Positions 40,556 through 47,893 of a stretch of DNA of 64,000 nucleotides are shown one piece after another (position 1 is the first letter of the stretch; each line of letters opens with the position of its first letter). Position numbers and translations under genes: made by a program. Origin of the DNA: Lepidodermella squamata (lineage: Eukaryota; Animalia; Gastrotricha). The stretch lies in NCBI GenBank assembly GCA_047495785.1, contig JBLDXI010000002.1, forward strand, positions 1,984,001 through 2,048,000. Direction: 5' to 3'. Below the pieces are notes generated by a model that was given only the letters and a program-made list of their open reading frames with translations, did not search any database and was not told the origin of the DNA.

Positions 40556-41350
40556 AAAAAACTTCTGAACATCCTAATCGTGTTAATCTTGTCCGCTTCG
40601 AAAGAAGAATGCGTACTCGTTTTTCAACATAAACCTTTCAAAAATTATAACTAAACGAATTCCCTCAAGCTTTGCTATCCTTTCCATTTTCGAATATAGT
40701 AAAACTAATTTGAAATCCTAAACCTAATGGAGAACCTGAGCTATACATAGCTGTAGCAGAAATAAACAATAAAAAGAGAATCGAGATAACTTTGGAATAA
40801 CTATTGCTCCATGTCGAGGTTGCTGAGACCATCTCGAGAAATCCCTGAATCGGTATGATTTGATATGGTACGATACCCATCAATGAAATGGACTACCCCA
40901 TACTTCTTCAGCGGCGAAACAACCTGATTATTTTTAAGACTGTTTACTATCAGAGGCCAATGCTAAGCACTGTCAATATCCCGATTGCACTTGGTAAGAT
41001 TGCTAATCGTCATCTTGAAAAATTCCTGCTCCAAGATTATTCAGGGGATGCCGCATTTTTTGCTCATTTTTCACCTACAATCAAGGTTCCACCTCACAAA
41101 AGAAACCGAATGCCTCACCGGCGATTCCGTGAACCCCTGGCGATTCATATTAATTCAAATCTGATGTAATTTTGCGTTAGGGTCCATCAGTGGCTTTGGT
41201 CCAACGCTGTTATAGGTACATGAGGAGCCTAGAAATATGTAAATTACGGGGTTAGTTTCCGCCAACTGCATTTGTAACATGAATCATCTTGATTAATAAA
41301 CGGATCTGGTAGTTGACAGATTGAAGGCTAAAAGCTGAAAGCTGAACTTG

Positions 41351-42778
41351 ATGTTAACATTTATTTGCCTTCTGGTGTTCGGGCTTTTGGCCCATGGGAC
41401 CGATGCGACGCGAATTTACCAAACAAACAGGAATGCCGGAGCAGCTAATCGGAATACCTATCAAGCTTCCCAAGCTTCAGCTGCTAACAGACTAAGTGCT
41501 GCTAACAATGTGCTTAGACAAAATTCAGGTCTGCTGAATGCTGACGACGGCCAGCTTGGATCCCCGTTGAATATTCCCAGGGTAAGCAAAATTCTCCCGA
41601 AACCATCATACGTGCGCCGTCGTTTACAAATGTTTTTCACAAAGTTTTTGTCATTTGAGACAATGGTCACCATCCTTAAAAATCATTCTAGAACGCTGAA
41701 AACAGGTCTATAAAGTAACTTTTTGAGCCGCACATTTTGGTGAATTTTTCAGATTTTTATTACATGTCTAACTCGTAGAAAATTGGGCCTAAATGACATG
41801 AAAAAAATTAAATTGCCGAATTTTTAGTTGAAAATATGATTTTCGGAATCAGCAATTTTTTTAACCCAAGAAATGAGTTGATAAACACTTCGATTCAAAT
41901 ATTTTCATTTTTCGCTAATTGCCGGTTACGGTTAGCTAATTGAGAGAAAAATCGGTAGCCAGTGTGCAGAGCGTCATCGATTACCTACTGGGTTGTGTTT
42001 TTTATTGCGAAATCGTAATTTTTAAGGGGGCAACCATTGTGTCGAAAATTTCTCAGTTTTTCGAATTTGTGAACGACGGCGCCCGTATGATACTATAGAA
42101 GTTTTATATCAACAGCAGAACAATGTTTGGGGCTCGTTCAACAGTAATCCAAGGGTTCAGCCTTCCGTCTCCAGTTATCAGCAAAGCGTTTTGGCCAACC
42201 TCGAGAATCAACCTCCGTTGCCATCGAATGCACAATGGCTCGACCCGAATCGAGTTAGATTCTCGCAGAACAGCGTCAGTCACTTCAAAGGCACAAATGT
42301 TGGCCAGACGTATGAAACTCTTGTCGAAAGCATGCGAAACGGAGGTTGGGACGTTAATGCAAAGCCTCTTGATGTTGTCAGGTTCCCGACTGGAGGACTG
42401 ACGTCCATCGACAACACGAGGGTCCTTGCAGCCCGCAGAGCTAGCACCGATATTGCCGCCGTAGTTCATCCCCACAACGAACCCCTGTCCCCAGGTATGC
42501 TCCGAAGATTCAAGCCAGAAGCTGAAGCCTTGTCGAATAACCAACCCGGTAGAGTCGTTCAAACGTGGGGGGATGCGGTTGAAGGTCGTATGTTGAACAC
42601 GAGAGATAAGGACTTCTATCGTCAAAATCGAGGTGGGTATAATCCGGGCACGGGCTTTACCGATTTCGGATCCAACAACCCACCAGTTGTAACCTTATCG
42701 CAATGGCAGAGGGAGCTGTTCGAGAATTCGGTCAACCAGCCCCTACCACCCTATGTCAACACAAATTATTACGGTTGA
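41351..42778 (+). CDS. Secreted protein with C-terminal bacterial polymorphic-toxin-type ParB/sulfiredoxin-like domain (2 exons, about 297 aa)
   Basis: Exon 41351-41581 (signal peptide MLTFICLLVFGLLAHGTDA plus N/Q/A linker) joins in phase 0 to 42116-42778: LDPNRVRFSQNSV...LVESMRNGGW...PLDVVRFPTGGLTSIDNTRVLAAR...TWGDAV. Confidence 0.72.
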
Positions 42779-43031
42779 GAGAAATAACGGACCACAACCC
42801 TAAAATAGAGAACTCCCTTGTTTTCCTGTTATGCCAAATAAAAATCCTATTTTCCCTCAATAATTTGAATTGATCTCATTTGCGATGCAATCTATTCGAT
42901 CAGTGATGAATATTTCATGTAAAATCGATAGCTTCAGGTTAGAGCTGTGCGAAAGGAAGTGTGTTCGATAAAAATCCGCATTTAACATCACCACTGTATA
43001 ACTAATGCACTGAGAGTTTCGAACCACGATT

Positions 43032-43719
43032 ATGTACGGGAAAGTCTTCAAGGTGAGCTGTACAAGATGAAGGCCAACTCCGCCTTAATCATTTTTCGAA
43101 ATAGAAACCCAGCGTCCACCCAGGGGCCGCTTTATTGGAAGCCACTGTAAGGCATAGCCATGCGGCAATGAAACGATGTCTAGGTCAGAAAAACGCCGAT
43201 GTTGGTTACCTGCACCCTCGAACCGGCGATTCCAGCCTAATCATCGCTGTTCGAGATGGTGATTACAAAGCCACTGAAATTCTACTGAAAGCAGGCGCTG
43301 ATGCTAATGATACCGAGGGTCCCTATCGAATCTGGGTATCTCAAACAGGGTCTTGGGATGCTGATGAGCATATCGAACGCCGAGTTGGCCGAAAGACTGC
43401 ACTAGCCCTAGCTGCTAGTAGTGGCGAAGCCACCTTGGTCGATCTACTGCTTCAAAACGGGGCGGATATCAATGCATTGGACGATAGTAAGATGACGGCG
43501 TTAATGCATGCGGCTAAATGCGATAAACAGGGCGAAGCTGTGAAAATTTTGCTCGATAAAGGCGCTGATGCTGAGATCAAGAATGCGATTGGGCTAACTG
43601 CTTTGGACATAGCGAAACGAAACAGAACATTCAATGCCATTCGTATTTTAGAGAAGCGAAAAGTTAGCGACAATAAGAATAGTGACCAACAGCAGTCAGA
43701 AGATGGATTGGCTGAATAA
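43032..43719 (+). CDS. Ankyrin-repeat protein (2 exons)
   Basis: Exon 43032-43052, 52-bp intron, exon 43105-43719. Repeats GDSSLIIAV...LLKAGADAN, TALALAA...LLLQNGADIN, TALMHAA...LLDKGAD, GLTALDIA. Confidence 0.85.
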
Positions 43720-43814: not shown

Positions 43815-44976
43815 TCAAGAGCTTGAAGTTGTTCCCCTCTGGGTTATCCTCCTAATTTTGACCATTTCTTGAGTTGTTGTAGTGGCTGGAGTAGTTGTTG
43901 ACGTGGCCAAAGTCGGCTCGGATTCGCGCGATTTTTCAACATTTTTTATCAGGAAAGCAATTTTAATATCGTGCGGGAAGCTGCAGAAATCTGTAAAAAA
44001 GGTAAAAGGTTTTTTAACTTTTCTTAGGTTTCATAGGACTGGCAAGGTGTTATAAACAAAACTTCAAGGCATTTTTCCAGTCTTTAGTTTAATTTTTGAA
44101 AAAATTAAGAAATATGAAGAAATAACATCAATAGGCTTTACCTCCATCGCCGCAATAATAAGAAGGAGTTAGGACGACAATAGGCGATTTGACTAAGACC
44201 AGGTAATGATTGAGTATGCTTTCGTCATGCCAAACGGGCGTAATCTGCTTCGACATATCACTCCTAGCACACGCCTCCATAAAGTGCCACAAATTCATAA
44301 CTTCCTCCTTCTTGCCGCCATAAAACGCCCCGCTGTAATACATATTCCCCAGGTGAGACGGGACACTGGCACAAGATTCCGGGTTCTGCTCGAACGGAAA
44401 ATTTGACCGTCGATCACCGAAGTGAAAGTGATGCCAAACCGCGACGAGGTCGTTCAAAATCTCTGGCCCGATGATGCCGGTGAATTTAACATCGGAATCC
44501 AAATTGAACATGTAGTCCAAATCACTTCGTTCGAAAACATCAGTTGAGTTCAGGTACATTTCCGGCCTTAGCATAGAGTCTCCCGGCCATTCAAGCCTAT
44601 CTTGTTTGATGACAACCACGTCGTTTCCGGTCGGCGCTTCTTTCATGCGATTTGTGTAGATGAAATAAGTCACCCTGTAGTACTTAGGGTTCGGTACACC
44701 GGTGAAGAGGTATTTTCGGCCCGATGTGATGAGATCATGCGTGAAATTGATGTAGTTGCCCAGTGCAACGATGAAGAAGCCTATTCGTATCACGCGATGA
44801 TTACCATCGTGCTTAATCGGCGTGAATGTCTCCTCTTCAATGACGCTTTGTAGCTCCTTCAACTGCCAGTAGTGGTCCGAAAGATTTGATCGAATCGACA
44901 GGCAGAAAACGAAAGTGAACACAATGATTAATCCGAGGAGGAAAGCTCTGTTAGTTAAGTAGGCAATGCACAGCAT
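43815..44976 (-). CDS. GT6-family (ABO/Forssman/alpha-1,3-GalT-like) glycosyltransferase (2 exons)
   Basis: TM anchor; IGFFIVALGNY, WPGDSMLR, DYMFNLDSD (DxD), YYSGAFYGG, WHDESILN, VLTPSY. Short second exon ends at 43815. Confidence 0.9.
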
Positions 44977-45758: not shown

Positions 45759-47893
45759 TTAATTTTCAGCCGATAATCTAGCGCCCGCATTCATGAGAAT
45801 TTCATTTGTTCTCAACACATCTACGTCTTTAACACCTAAAGCGGGCTGACGAGCTAACTGCAGAGCGGTGTGCCCATTTCTGCCGGCAGCGTTCACGTTT
45901 GCTCGAAATTCATTGATCAGCGTTGCGACAACTGCGTGTTGGCCCATAACTGAAGCGACCATTAATGGTGTGAAGCCATTAACATCGGCTGCCTCAACCT
46001 TGGCCGCGAACTGGCCAGCAAGCGCCTTCACCACCTCGACGTGGCCATTCATGGCAGCGATGTACAATGGTGTAGCGCCTTGACTATTGGTTGCCTCAAC
46101 ATTTGCCTTGTAACGGCCAGCCAGCGTCTTAACCACCTCGAGGTGGCCATTCTGGGCGGCCACAAAAAATGGCCTAGCACCAAGACCATTGTATGCCTCA
46201 ACATTGGCCTTGAAACGGCCAGCCAGAATATCAACAACGTCATTGTAGCCCCTTGAAGCGGCAAGGAGCAGAAGTGGATTTTCGCCTTCGCCATCCCTGC
46301 AGTCGGCAATCAAGCCAAGCTGCTTGTCAGACAGCAGTTGAATTAATTTGGAGAGATCTTTTTCCTTGCTAACACAGTCGATGAGCATCTGGAATTGCAA
46401 TAGCGTTTACTCATGAATCACTCAGACTTCCATAGTTCATAAAAACAACCTGTACGTTCCTAGGGTCAGGGTGAATGGCAGGCATCTGTCACAAGATAAA
46501 TGTAATAAGTTTATGAGTTTAGCTCCGAAACCAAGCTGAAGCGGTTTAAGGAAGATTCACCGGAATTTCAGATGGATTAATATCTGAACTTCTTTGTGGC
46601 ATTGGCACTGTGGCATTTGCAGTAGCATCTGCCTCGATTGTTTGACGTAAAAAGCTACTCCTATGAAGCTGCTCTGCAGTCGCCCGGCGATCAACTTCTC
46701 TCTCAAGCATCGACATGATGAATTTTCGAAGTTCAGCTGAATACCCTCGAGACTCGTCAAATGCTCTGGGAGTGTCCCTGATTGAGAAGATGATATTATT
46801 TTGTTTCAAAGTTGGAGCCAGCTTACTGTATGATTGCGCTTTGGTAGTCAAACTGAAAGGGATAAGGTACAATTCGTTTTTCGAATTTTCTTAAGAGCGC
46901 GGCTATTCATACGTACGAATATATGTACAAATATCCAAAACGGCGTGCATAAATAATATACGTATCAATAGCCACTCTATTGTGTTATTCTTCTTACGGG
47001 TTTTGCGAAATTCGAGATTTCGAACAGCGTAACACCGACCGACCACCAGTCGCTCGCTGGCGTGTTTTTCTCCCCTTCAAAAAGCTCAGGAGGGGCGTAC
47101 AACACTGATGCCAAGCCAGTGACTGTCGTTTCAGACTCCCTGGAAGGATCTCATGCCATAAGTAAGGAAATCTTACACTCGGCTGGAACTTACGGGTTAA
47201 AAACCTTTGCGATACCAAAATCGCCTAGTTTCACGTTATTTCCCTTAAGAAAAACATTTTCTGGCTTGATGTCGCGATGTAAAATTGGGATTTCATGCAA
47301 TAACGTGACGGCCGAAACAAGTTGACGCGACCACTTTTGAATAAGTACTTCAGGTATTGGACATGTGGCTTCTTGATAGTATTTCGACAGATCACCACCC
47401 TCGCAAAACTCCATAACCAGGTAGTACATCAAATCCCCTTTTCTCACTTCATCAACCTCTGAAAATTAAAATGTCCAAGAAATGTATCGTTAAAATTATA
47501 GCGCGCCTGAACCCCACGAAACTCGAAGTGAGGAATTTTGCGCACTTATTTTTTATTTTTGAGATATTACCTTCGAAAGCTCCATAGATTCTAACAATGT
47601 TCGGGTGGCTGACTTGAGTTAATGTGACATGCTTTCATGTATATCTATCATTATATTGATTTACTTGAAAGAAAAAAACCTACCTCTTTTCGGGTCATAT
47701 CGACAATTTTATCAGCTGCTTTCTCATTGCCCACGATGCGACGTCGAATTTCAGACAGATTTGCTTCTTTGACGACATAATCGGCATAGTCGTTGTTTCG
47801 TTTGCAAAGCCACGCTGCTCCAAAGCCACCACTGCCTAGTCTTTCAACTTTCTCGAACTTGGACATTGACTTGTAAGGCGATGATGACGCCAT
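45759..47893 (-). CDS. NEK-like Ser/Thr kinase, probably continuing into C-terminal ankyrin repeats (multi-exon)
   Basis: LGSGGFG, YVVKE, HPNIV, VMEFCEGGDL, HRDIKPENVFL, KLGDFGIAK, YAPPE, SDWWSVG. Phase-0 introns 46560-46486 and 46449-46389 can link it to the ankyrin ORF (46388-45759). Two separate genes are also possible. Confidence 0.7.

Follow-up and report, generated by a model that had tools for sequence, protein, structure and literature searches.

The window analyzed here is a 64,000-nucleotide (nt) stretch of the genome of the gastrotrich Lepidodermella squamata (NCBI GenBank assembly GCA_047495785.1, contig JBLDXI010000002.1, positions 1,984,001 to 2,048,000), and all coordinates below are window positions on its forward strand unless stated otherwise. 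The sequence at 41351-42778, which agrees with that described in a first-pass annotation, contains a two-exon gene on the + strand (41351-41581 and 42116-42778) whose 297-residue product comprises (i) a signal-peptide-like start, (ii) a linker rich in asparagine, glutamine, serine, and alanine, (iii) a domain of about 155 amino acids (aa) of the type found at the tips of bacterial polymorphic toxins, and (iv) a short C-terminal tail. The gene is a resident, spliced, and expressed eukaryotic gene, and we hold, with somewhat better than even confidence, that its domain was horizontally acquired from a bacterial polymorphic-toxin tip and is now a retuned or weakened secreted effector.

Exon 1 (41351..41581) comprises 77 codons, including the start codon, the signal-peptide-like segment, and the first part of the linker, and ends in phase 0, with a GT donor directly after it. 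The ATG at 41351 is preceded by an in-frame stop (TGA, 41336-38), and RNA-like contigs begin at 41314 and leave the exon at 41581. The intron (41582..42115) is a phase 0 spliceosomal intron of 534 nt with GT..AG ends, the AG standing at 42114-15, and exon 2 (42116..42778) contributes 220 codons plus the stop (TGA, 42776-78), encoding the remaining linker, the toxin-type domain, and the tail; an AATAAA polyadenylation signal (42837..42842) follows 59 nt past the stop. The exon junction is seen in public-read contigs of two sequencing runs (two contigs in run X1, one in run X4), which skip exactly the 534 nt between the GT..AG ends (joint 41580>42115), the spliced X4 contig of 843 nt joining 41403-41580 to 42115-42779. 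In addition, the acceptor is of the NAGNAG type (cag-cag, 42114-42120), and X1 transcripts start exon 2 at either 42116 or 42119, the use of the alternative acceptor 3 nt downstream (joint 41580>42118, intron to 42118) meaning one glutamine more or less. Read depth in X1 is 200-650 over the exons versus 3-25 over the intron. Exon 2 is single copy in the genome, with no paralogues, and an intronless DNA copy therefore cannot account for the spliced contigs. The spliceosomal intron proposed in the first-pass annotation is thus borne out, with exons joined exactly at GT..AG in contigs of two runs, and its suggestion that the exons are joined and expressed is likewise upheld by the spliced contigs and the exon/intron depth contrast.

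The locus sits 2 Mb inside a contig of a 121-Mb, 151-contig assembly (window at 1.98-2.05 Mb). Its intron contains a non-coding, MITE-like (miniature inverted-repeat transposable element) host repeat of 483 bp (41607..42089, no strand assigned), flanked by AT on both sides and bounded by terminal inverted repeats of about 18 bp (CATACG...CGTATG), such that the intron minus the repeat measures 49 nt. Run X3, which looks like DNA, holds an allele lacking 485 bp of the intron (joint 41604>42090), and its depth over the repeat rises to 7787. Within this genome, matches to the repeat number at least 53 and are spread over more than 20 contigs, the full copies being 89-97% identical over query positions 3-485, and it is thus a young, polymorphic host repeat. 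A contig of a metagenomic RNA-seq run (X2) matches the intron repeat only (41778-42042, 5 differences in 265 nt), which places the repeat family, or the copy of a close relative, in an environmental sample. The coding sequence shows a GC content of 0.50 and a GC content at third codon positions (GC3) of 0.51, with GC3 values of 0.41-0.58 for eight other open reading frames (ORFs) of the window. Contamination is excluded, because the contigs are spliced and a host repeat lies inside the intron; the earlier argument against contamination holds on these two grounds as well as on contig position and a codon composition like that of the neighbors.

At the N-terminus, the first 19 residues (41351..41407) form a predicted cleavable signal peptide, with cleavage after HGTDA, a hydrophobic core at aa 2-14, a peak 11-aa hydropathy of 3.04, and small residues at positions -3 and -1, and a hydropathy scan detected no second hydrophobic segment anywhere in the protein. 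The signal peptide claimed in the first-pass annotation is thus seen as a signal-peptide-like start, by inspection and hydropathy only. The linker upstream of the domain comprises 93 aa rich in N, A, S, and Q, and the mature protein contains no Cys. The animal protein carries two small inserts relative to the bacterial members and, past the domain envelope, an animal-specific C-terminal tail of 27 aa (42695..42775) that is absent from them; the tail is partly modeled as a helix, its final ~10 residues having a predicted local distance difference test score (pLDDT) below 50.

The domain, as delimited by its hidden Markov model (HMM) envelope (42221..42694, aa 113-270), is of Tox-ParBL1 type with a predicted ParB/sulfiredoxin (Srx) fold and scores 142.6 bits against a 52-member family profile. 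The RFSQ, SM, GW, DNTR, RF, and TWG motifs and a further R all fall on family-conserved columns. In 229 bacterial members, the positions of RFSQ (42257..42268, aa 125-128) are R in 223, F in 195, S in 225, and Q in 227, and those of DNTR (42410..42421, aa 176-179) are D in 229/229, N in 228/229, T in 225/229, and R in 229/229. The pattern recognized in the first-pass annotation is real and far beyond chance, given the profile score and the E values of 1.5e-16 and 1e-10 of the only two matches returned by a word-indexed search of 5.8 billion proteins. Tox-ParBL1 was defined by a predicted ParB fold, a conserved N-terminal Ser, and a [NT][RT][RT] motif in which the Arg corresponds to the Arg of ParB DGHHR (Zhang, de Souza, Anantharaman, Iyer, Aravind 2012, PMC3482391). 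In the animal protein the conserved N-terminal Ser is represented by S127 (Ser in 225/229), N177-T178-R179 corresponds to the [NT][RT][RT] motif, and a ParB fold is predicted; the domain thus fits the published definition, the comparison being with that definition and its contexts. The type member is Neisseria gonorrhoeae NGK_2271, a MafB toxin (PMC3482391). By motif position and the same survey (PMC3482391), DNTR may be read as the equivalent of the phosphate-binding motif GxxR of ParB and GCHR of sulfiredoxin.

Scans of the domain against Pfam and NCBIfam returned no family (for Pfam, none at E ≤ 1, including PF02195), and Rfam returned nothing in the window. PDB sequence searches gave one chance match with the single protein (E 1.5) and 0 matches with the 52-row profile, so the fold assignment relies on predicted structure. 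The AlphaFold 2 (AF2) model, built from the 52-row alignment, has a mean pLDDT of 87 and a predicted template modeling score (pTM) of 0.80. In this model DNTR opens the helix after a β-hairpin, and ParB/Srx-fold proteins bind a nucleoside triphosphate through an arginine-ended motif at the start of such a helix. Foldseek's top 50 PDB matches (best E 1.5e-3) without exception have the ParB/Srx fold, and the list comprises ParB-CTP, PadC, Noc, KorB, Atu1540, sulfiredoxin, and the serine kinases SbnI and SerK. A second structural aligner gave a Z-score of 7.5 to plant sulfiredoxin 6ky4 (85/89 residues, root mean square deviation (rmsd) 2.5 Å) and of about 7 to the N-domains of ParB and Noc. In addition, some family members are named by NCBI 'ParB/Srx family N-terminal domain-containing protein'. 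The model, the Foldseek matches, and the Z-scores agree with the ParB/sulfiredoxin fold named in the first-pass annotation.

The bacterial family is large. An exhaustive profile search returned 1343 representative clusters at E ≤ 1e-3, 290 of them at ≤ 1e-30, and a single peptide pattern recovered 151 loci in named bacterial species, at 34-49% identity, spanning at least five phyla (Pseudomonadota, Bacillota, Actinomycetota, Bacteroidota, and Campylobacterota). The 232 members examined all carry the domain at their C-terminal end, with 0-13 aa (median 1) beyond it. The modules found upstream in long members comprise (i) RHS, (ii) TPS plus filamentous haemagglutinin with PT-VENN or DUF637 (CdiA type), (iii) the extracellular contractile injection system (eCIS) core, (iv) PT-TG, and (v) SpvB/TcdB; a fold search of the ESM Atlas adds MafB (PF06255) and PT-HINT clusters, the MafB cluster superposing on the model with a template modeling (TM) score of 0.69 and an rmsd of 1.7 Å over 136 residues. 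One of the two word-search matches (P0002) displays a textbook end of the RHS core with the homologous tip directly after it, and the nearest BLAST neighbors of the animal protein stand mostly behind PT-VENN modules. No MafB fusion was found in the 7 domain-carrying genomes of 81 sampled from one family (taken as Neisseriaceae), which have PT-VENN or RHS instead. The identification of the domain as a polymorphic-toxin C-terminal tip is thereby well founded. The published contexts of Tox-ParBL1 are RHS, filamentous haemagglutinin, MafB, WXG/LXG, and HINT, with Imm-SUKH or Imm44 immunity (PMC3482391).

At almost every bacterial locus an ORF of 115-146 aa starts within a few bases of the toxin stop, and these downstream ORFs form one family with 28-56% identity across phyla. 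Among ten that were scanned, seven show weak SUKH-family matches, one of which just reaches the Pfam cut-off (25.5 vs 25.4 bits). This immunity-type family has invariant W36, P58, P64, F65, A66, D72, C76, and W111 (numbering of member L002) and is poorly captured by Pfam, since only one of the ten scanned just reaches the SUKH threshold. No homologue of it was found in the animal genome, a blank that is weak evidence. Two further bacterial sequences deserve mention. A tip in a Chitinophagaceae metagenome bin matches that of Pseudomonas lini exactly and that of P. bananamidigenes almost exactly (L041 and L040, also L024), and its contig is probably mis-binned rather than a case of cross-phylum transfer. 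In P0113, a bacterial protein of 298 aa, the N-terminal part of about 150 aa ahead of the ParBL1 tip resembles, by eye, an ADP-ribosyltransferase-type toxin, and the protein may carry two warheads.

The named matches of the animal domain are all bacterial, with no eukaryote-named protein among the 120 matches listed; the searches list the best 120-150 matches, and the animal sequence's own score would be close to this cut or lower. ESM Atlas clusters at TM 0.64-0.70 (rmsd 1.5-2.1) are 100% bacterial, and a feature-based search of the same resource yielded nothing but bacterial clusters without names, all below 0.9. By BLAST, profile, and fold the closest relatives are bacterial toxin tips at 37-48% identity, and the contigs of the nearest relatives are compact prokaryotic gene arrays. 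No close relative of 121-385 aa sharing words with the animal protein was found among the 5.8 billion proteins, and none was found in metagenome contigs. The best matches are therefore those that the first-pass annotation expected, bacterial tips with no widespread eukaryotic proteins among the matches listed. Two trees were computed, the first with 230 rows and a more careful one with 76 named bacterial tips plus the animal sequence. The latter comprises a deep split (support 100/98) between a side of mostly Bacillota, Actinomycetota, and Bacteroidota and a side of mostly Pseudomonadota; this second side includes the animal sequence, without a resolved position and on the longest branch by far (2.33). 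From this we infer the direction of transfer and the donor side, that is, an old transfer from a Pseudomonadota-type CdiA/RHS tip, and no specific donor can be named because the animal branch is too long. The nearest row of the first tree (P0051), of similar length, was considered as a second eukaryotic copy and rejected, because its surroundings are a compact bacterial gene array that includes an immunity-type ORF; the N-termini of the other long-branch rows are bacterial too.

The animal copy keeps 27 of the 33 positions conserved at ≥90% in the family and 32 of the 42 conserved at ≥80%, including R235, RFSQ, SM, GW, DNTR, RF, and TWG. Bacterial rows keep 34-42 of the 42 (median 40), and the ten lost in the animal are more than in any of 51 bacterial rows. 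Two of the changes fall on sites that are otherwise essentially fixed: Thr239 (42599..42601) replaces a Gln present in 229/229 bacterial members, and Thr169 (42389..42391) an Asp present in 227/229; in addition, the animal has Phe167 where 226/229 bacterial members have Met. The examined runs (X1, X3, and X4) contain no read variants at codons 167, 169, or 239. A second haplotype, seen in the same three runs, differs at ten sites of exon 2, five synonymous and five nonsynonymous, with a ratio of nonsynonymous to synonymous polymorphism (pN/pS) of 0.30. The linker and domain core (42116-42601) comprise 0 nonsynonymous and 2 synonymous allelic differences, and all five nonsynonymous differences lie after 42600, in the domain end and the tail, two of them in the tail (aa 281 and 289). 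With an invariant Gln and a near-invariant Asp lost, the activity can be argued to be changed or weakened, and from sequence it is probably retuned or weakened rather than unchanged.

Comparison with known systems places the animal protein closest to Tox-ParBL1 itself. The two share the serine, the motif, and the predicted fold described above; the bacterial relatives stand, as in the published family, at the extreme C-terminus behind RHS, haemagglutinin, and (by fold match) MafB-type modules, in the same phyla, and are followed by a small conserved ORF with weak SUKH-family matches. On the other hand, where the bacterial toxins have a delivery module the animal protein has a predicted signal peptide and a low-complexity linker, and it has an intron, two small inserts, and a 27-aa tail, no immunity partner having been found, and Thr at the bacterial invariant Gln and near-invariant Asp. 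The 2012 survey reports Tox-ParBL1 in 'several metazoans' and also in fungi, plants, and protists, and places it with nucleic-acid-targeting toxins by analogy only; it regards the sporadic movement of toxin domains into animals as a pattern and takes the presence of introns to prove residence (PMC3482391). The text of its supplement lists no eukaryotic ParBL1 members, and ParB goes unmentioned in the companion review (PMC3417536).

ToxB is a tip of CdiA toxins that has a classical ParB fold; it is an ATPase that binds ATP, shows toxicity in bacteria as well as in plant cells, and can be blocked by its immunity protein, which makes it an experimentally supported model; it is rare, occurring in 52 of 68,709 species, and was found through Pfam PF02195 (Kaljevic et al. 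2026, bioRxiv 10.64898/2026.05.05.722872). The ParBL1-type family resembles it in comprising ParB-fold CdiA tips after VENN, with a small immunity gene next and an arginine-ended phosphate-binding motif opening the helix that follows the β-hairpin, and differs in having no PF02195 match, D-N-T-R in place of G-N-H-R (Asp for Gly in 229/229), and a far wider distribution, with 1343 clusters and the genomes of 151 species by a single peptide pattern. ToxB is the nearest tested analogue found, on a different branch from the ParBL1-type family. Sulfiredoxin, the best structural match (6ky4), is likewise a single small domain without DNA-binding parts. It requires the Cys of GCHR, is cytosolic, and is conserved across eukaryotes, whereas the animal protein has Asn177 in place of the catalytic Cys and lacks Cys altogether in its mature form, is predicted to be secreted, and is seen in one lineage only. 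Sulfiredoxin is itself a ParB-fold domain thought to have been taken from bacteria by eukaryotes (PMC3482391). Canonical ParB partition proteins also differ, the animal domain of about 155 aa being followed by a 27-aa tail only and giving no Pfam match. Finally, the domesticated toxin domains of animals include Dae amidases, CdtB, pierisin-type ADP-ribosyltransferases, and the teneurin GHH domain (PMC3482391, section 47). They share with the present case a bacterial conflict domain in an animal genome, eukaryotic gene features, a secretion signal (Dae), and retention without an immunity gene, and teneurin illustrates that such domains can lose their catalytic form; they are unlike it in fold and chemistry, the Dae amidases attacking the cell wall from outside whereas ParBL1-type relatives act inside the target cell.

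The favored explanation, an old acquisition followed by retuning, would run as follows. The source of the domain would have been the C-terminal 'warhead' of a bacterial polymorphic toxin, with CdiA/RHS-type tips of Pseudomonadota as closest kin. In the host, the bacterial delivery module and the immunity gene would have been lost, and a signal peptide, a disordered N/Q/S/A-rich linker, an intron, and a short tail gained. The protein would be routed out of the cell, a routing that would also spare the producer's own cytosol. Most likely, the SM..GW segment and the DNTR arginine would form a pocket in which a nucleoside triphosphate is still bound, as in ParB, sulfiredoxin, and ToxB, and chemistry or potency would differ from those of the bacterial toxins because the invariant Gln and the near-invariant Asp are replaced by Thr. 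Its targets would lie beyond the producing cell and could be microbes, food, or extracellular nucleotides, or the protein may be delivered during feeding.

Several points weigh against this explanation. No measured activity of any Tox-ParBL1 domain was found in the literature searched, and the secreted protein has no recognizable module for entry into target cells. The fold Z-scores of 7-7.5 are moderate, though the match list is uniform, and the predicted signal peptide was judged by eye and hydropathy. The tree placement depends on a very long branch; divergent eukaryotic relatives may lie hidden below the matches listed; Zhang et al. report eukaryotic ParBL1 domains, and one cnidarian C2H2 zinc-finger cluster matches the fold at TM 0.48 and rmsd 3.0. 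The allelic test of selection is based on ten differences only. Finally, the changes at residues 169 and 239 could instead reflect lost contact with an immunity protein, the activity being intact.

The alternatives differ from the favored explanation either in what the protein now does or in where it came from. A narrower version, entertained tentatively, is that the Gln and Asp changes are what made an immunity-free secreted protein out of a toxin warhead, the product being a 'detoxified' ParBL1 that has taken on a new role outside the cell, for example in sensing or scavenging nucleotides or in binding microbes. Slightly less likely is the opposite view that the weapon is unchanged, a fully active toxin with the bacterial mechanism, secreted as an antibacterial, venom, or digestive effector and kept from its producer by the secretory pathway only. 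This view draws on the retention of all core motifs, including the invariant DNTR and GW, on an expressed and spliced gene with a signal-peptide-like start and 0 nonsynonymous allelic changes in linker and core, on the precedents of domesticated bacterial effectors in animals (PMC3482391), and on ToxB, a ParB-fold tip toxic across kingdoms; it has to contend with the replacement of Gln239 (229/229) and Asp169 (227/229), with the loss of 10/42 conserved positions, and with the lack of an entry or delivery module, given that bacterial tips depend on CdiA, RHS, or MafB machinery. The horizontally acquired effector enzyme proposed in the first-pass annotation accordingly stands as to its acquisition, whereas an unchanged activity is disfavored by the replaced Gln and Asp and the missing delivery module. 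Loss of all function, with the transferred gene transcribed but useless, is very improbable. The lost Gln and Asp, the longest branch of the tree, and the five nonsynonymous versus three synonymous allelic differences after 42600 would suit such a relic, but the 297-codon frame is intact in both haplotypes, splicing is correct, and X1 exon depth is high, 27/33 positions at ≥90% conservation are kept despite great divergence, the fold prediction is confident, and exon-2 pN/pS is 0.30, with 0 in linker and core.

As regards origin, a vertically inherited eukaryotic ParBL1 protein in place of a lineage-specific transfer is improbable, though a little less so than decay. Eukaryotic Tox-ParBL1 domains have been described, some suggested to be early acquisitions (PMC3482391), a cnidarian C2H2 cluster matches the fold at TM 0.48, the searches cover the top matches, and the long branch, host-like codon use, and intron indicate that the transfer is not recent. 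Nevertheless, the nearest kin by BLAST, profile, and fold are all bacterial tips at 37-48% identity, no eukaryote-named protein occurs among the 120 matches listed and no close relative was obtained by word search or in metagenome contigs, and the cnidarian cluster both fits far worse (TM 0.48 vs 0.64-0.70) and has a different, zinc-finger architecture. A bacterial fragment joined to eukaryotic DNA by contamination or mis-assembly, to which the exclusively bacterial relatives among the matches could point, has a practically negligible probability: a GT..AG intron is removed in transcripts of two runs, the host repeat within it is polymorphic and has 53 or more matches in the genome, the gene has a host-like GC3 and is embedded 2 Mb inside its contig, two haplotypes occur in independent runs, and identity to any bacterial sequence is at most 48%.

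The neighborhood of the gene comprises two ankyrin-repeat ORFs, at 43135-43719 (+ strand, Ank_2, E 5e-28) and 45759-46400 (- strand, E 2e-33), the former sharing the strand of the toxin-type gene and starting 357 nt after it. The known classes of immunity proteins for polymorphic toxins include ankyrin proteins; the downstream ORF was considered as an Imm-ank-type partner and set aside, because ankyrin ORFs are common here, with two within 4 kb, and adjacency alone is insufficient. In addition, an ORF at 44128-44976 (- strand) contains a clear glycosyltransferase family 6 (ABO-type) domain (E 3.4e-36), a family that is patchy outside vertebrates and bacteria.

The novelty implied by the first-pass annotation is smaller than it appeared, Tox-ParBL1 in 'several metazoans' having been reported in 2012 (PMC3482391). 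Family, predicted fold, and metazoan presence have been known since then, and the advance is incremental; no description of a secreted animal ParBL1 protein, or of a ParBL1 protein in rotifers, was found in the literature searched. The notable feature is the pair of substitutions at sites kept in 229/229 and 227/229 bacterial members. Tox-ParBL1 is among the commoner bacterial polymorphic-toxin tips (1343 clusters), and the animal copy is a clean, well-documented eukaryotic takeover of a conflict-system domain, attested by its splicing, by the host repeat that its intron contains, and by two haplotypes. The two substitutions constitute a natural experiment, marking residues likely to be important for toxicity or immunity binding and suggesting how a host without an immunity gene can keep a toxin domain. 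Should the protein prove to be secreted and active as an effector, it would represent a new type of animal antimicrobial or feeding enzyme; if it is a detoxified ParBL1, it would indicate which residues carry toxicity in a very large and biochemically uncharacterized family.

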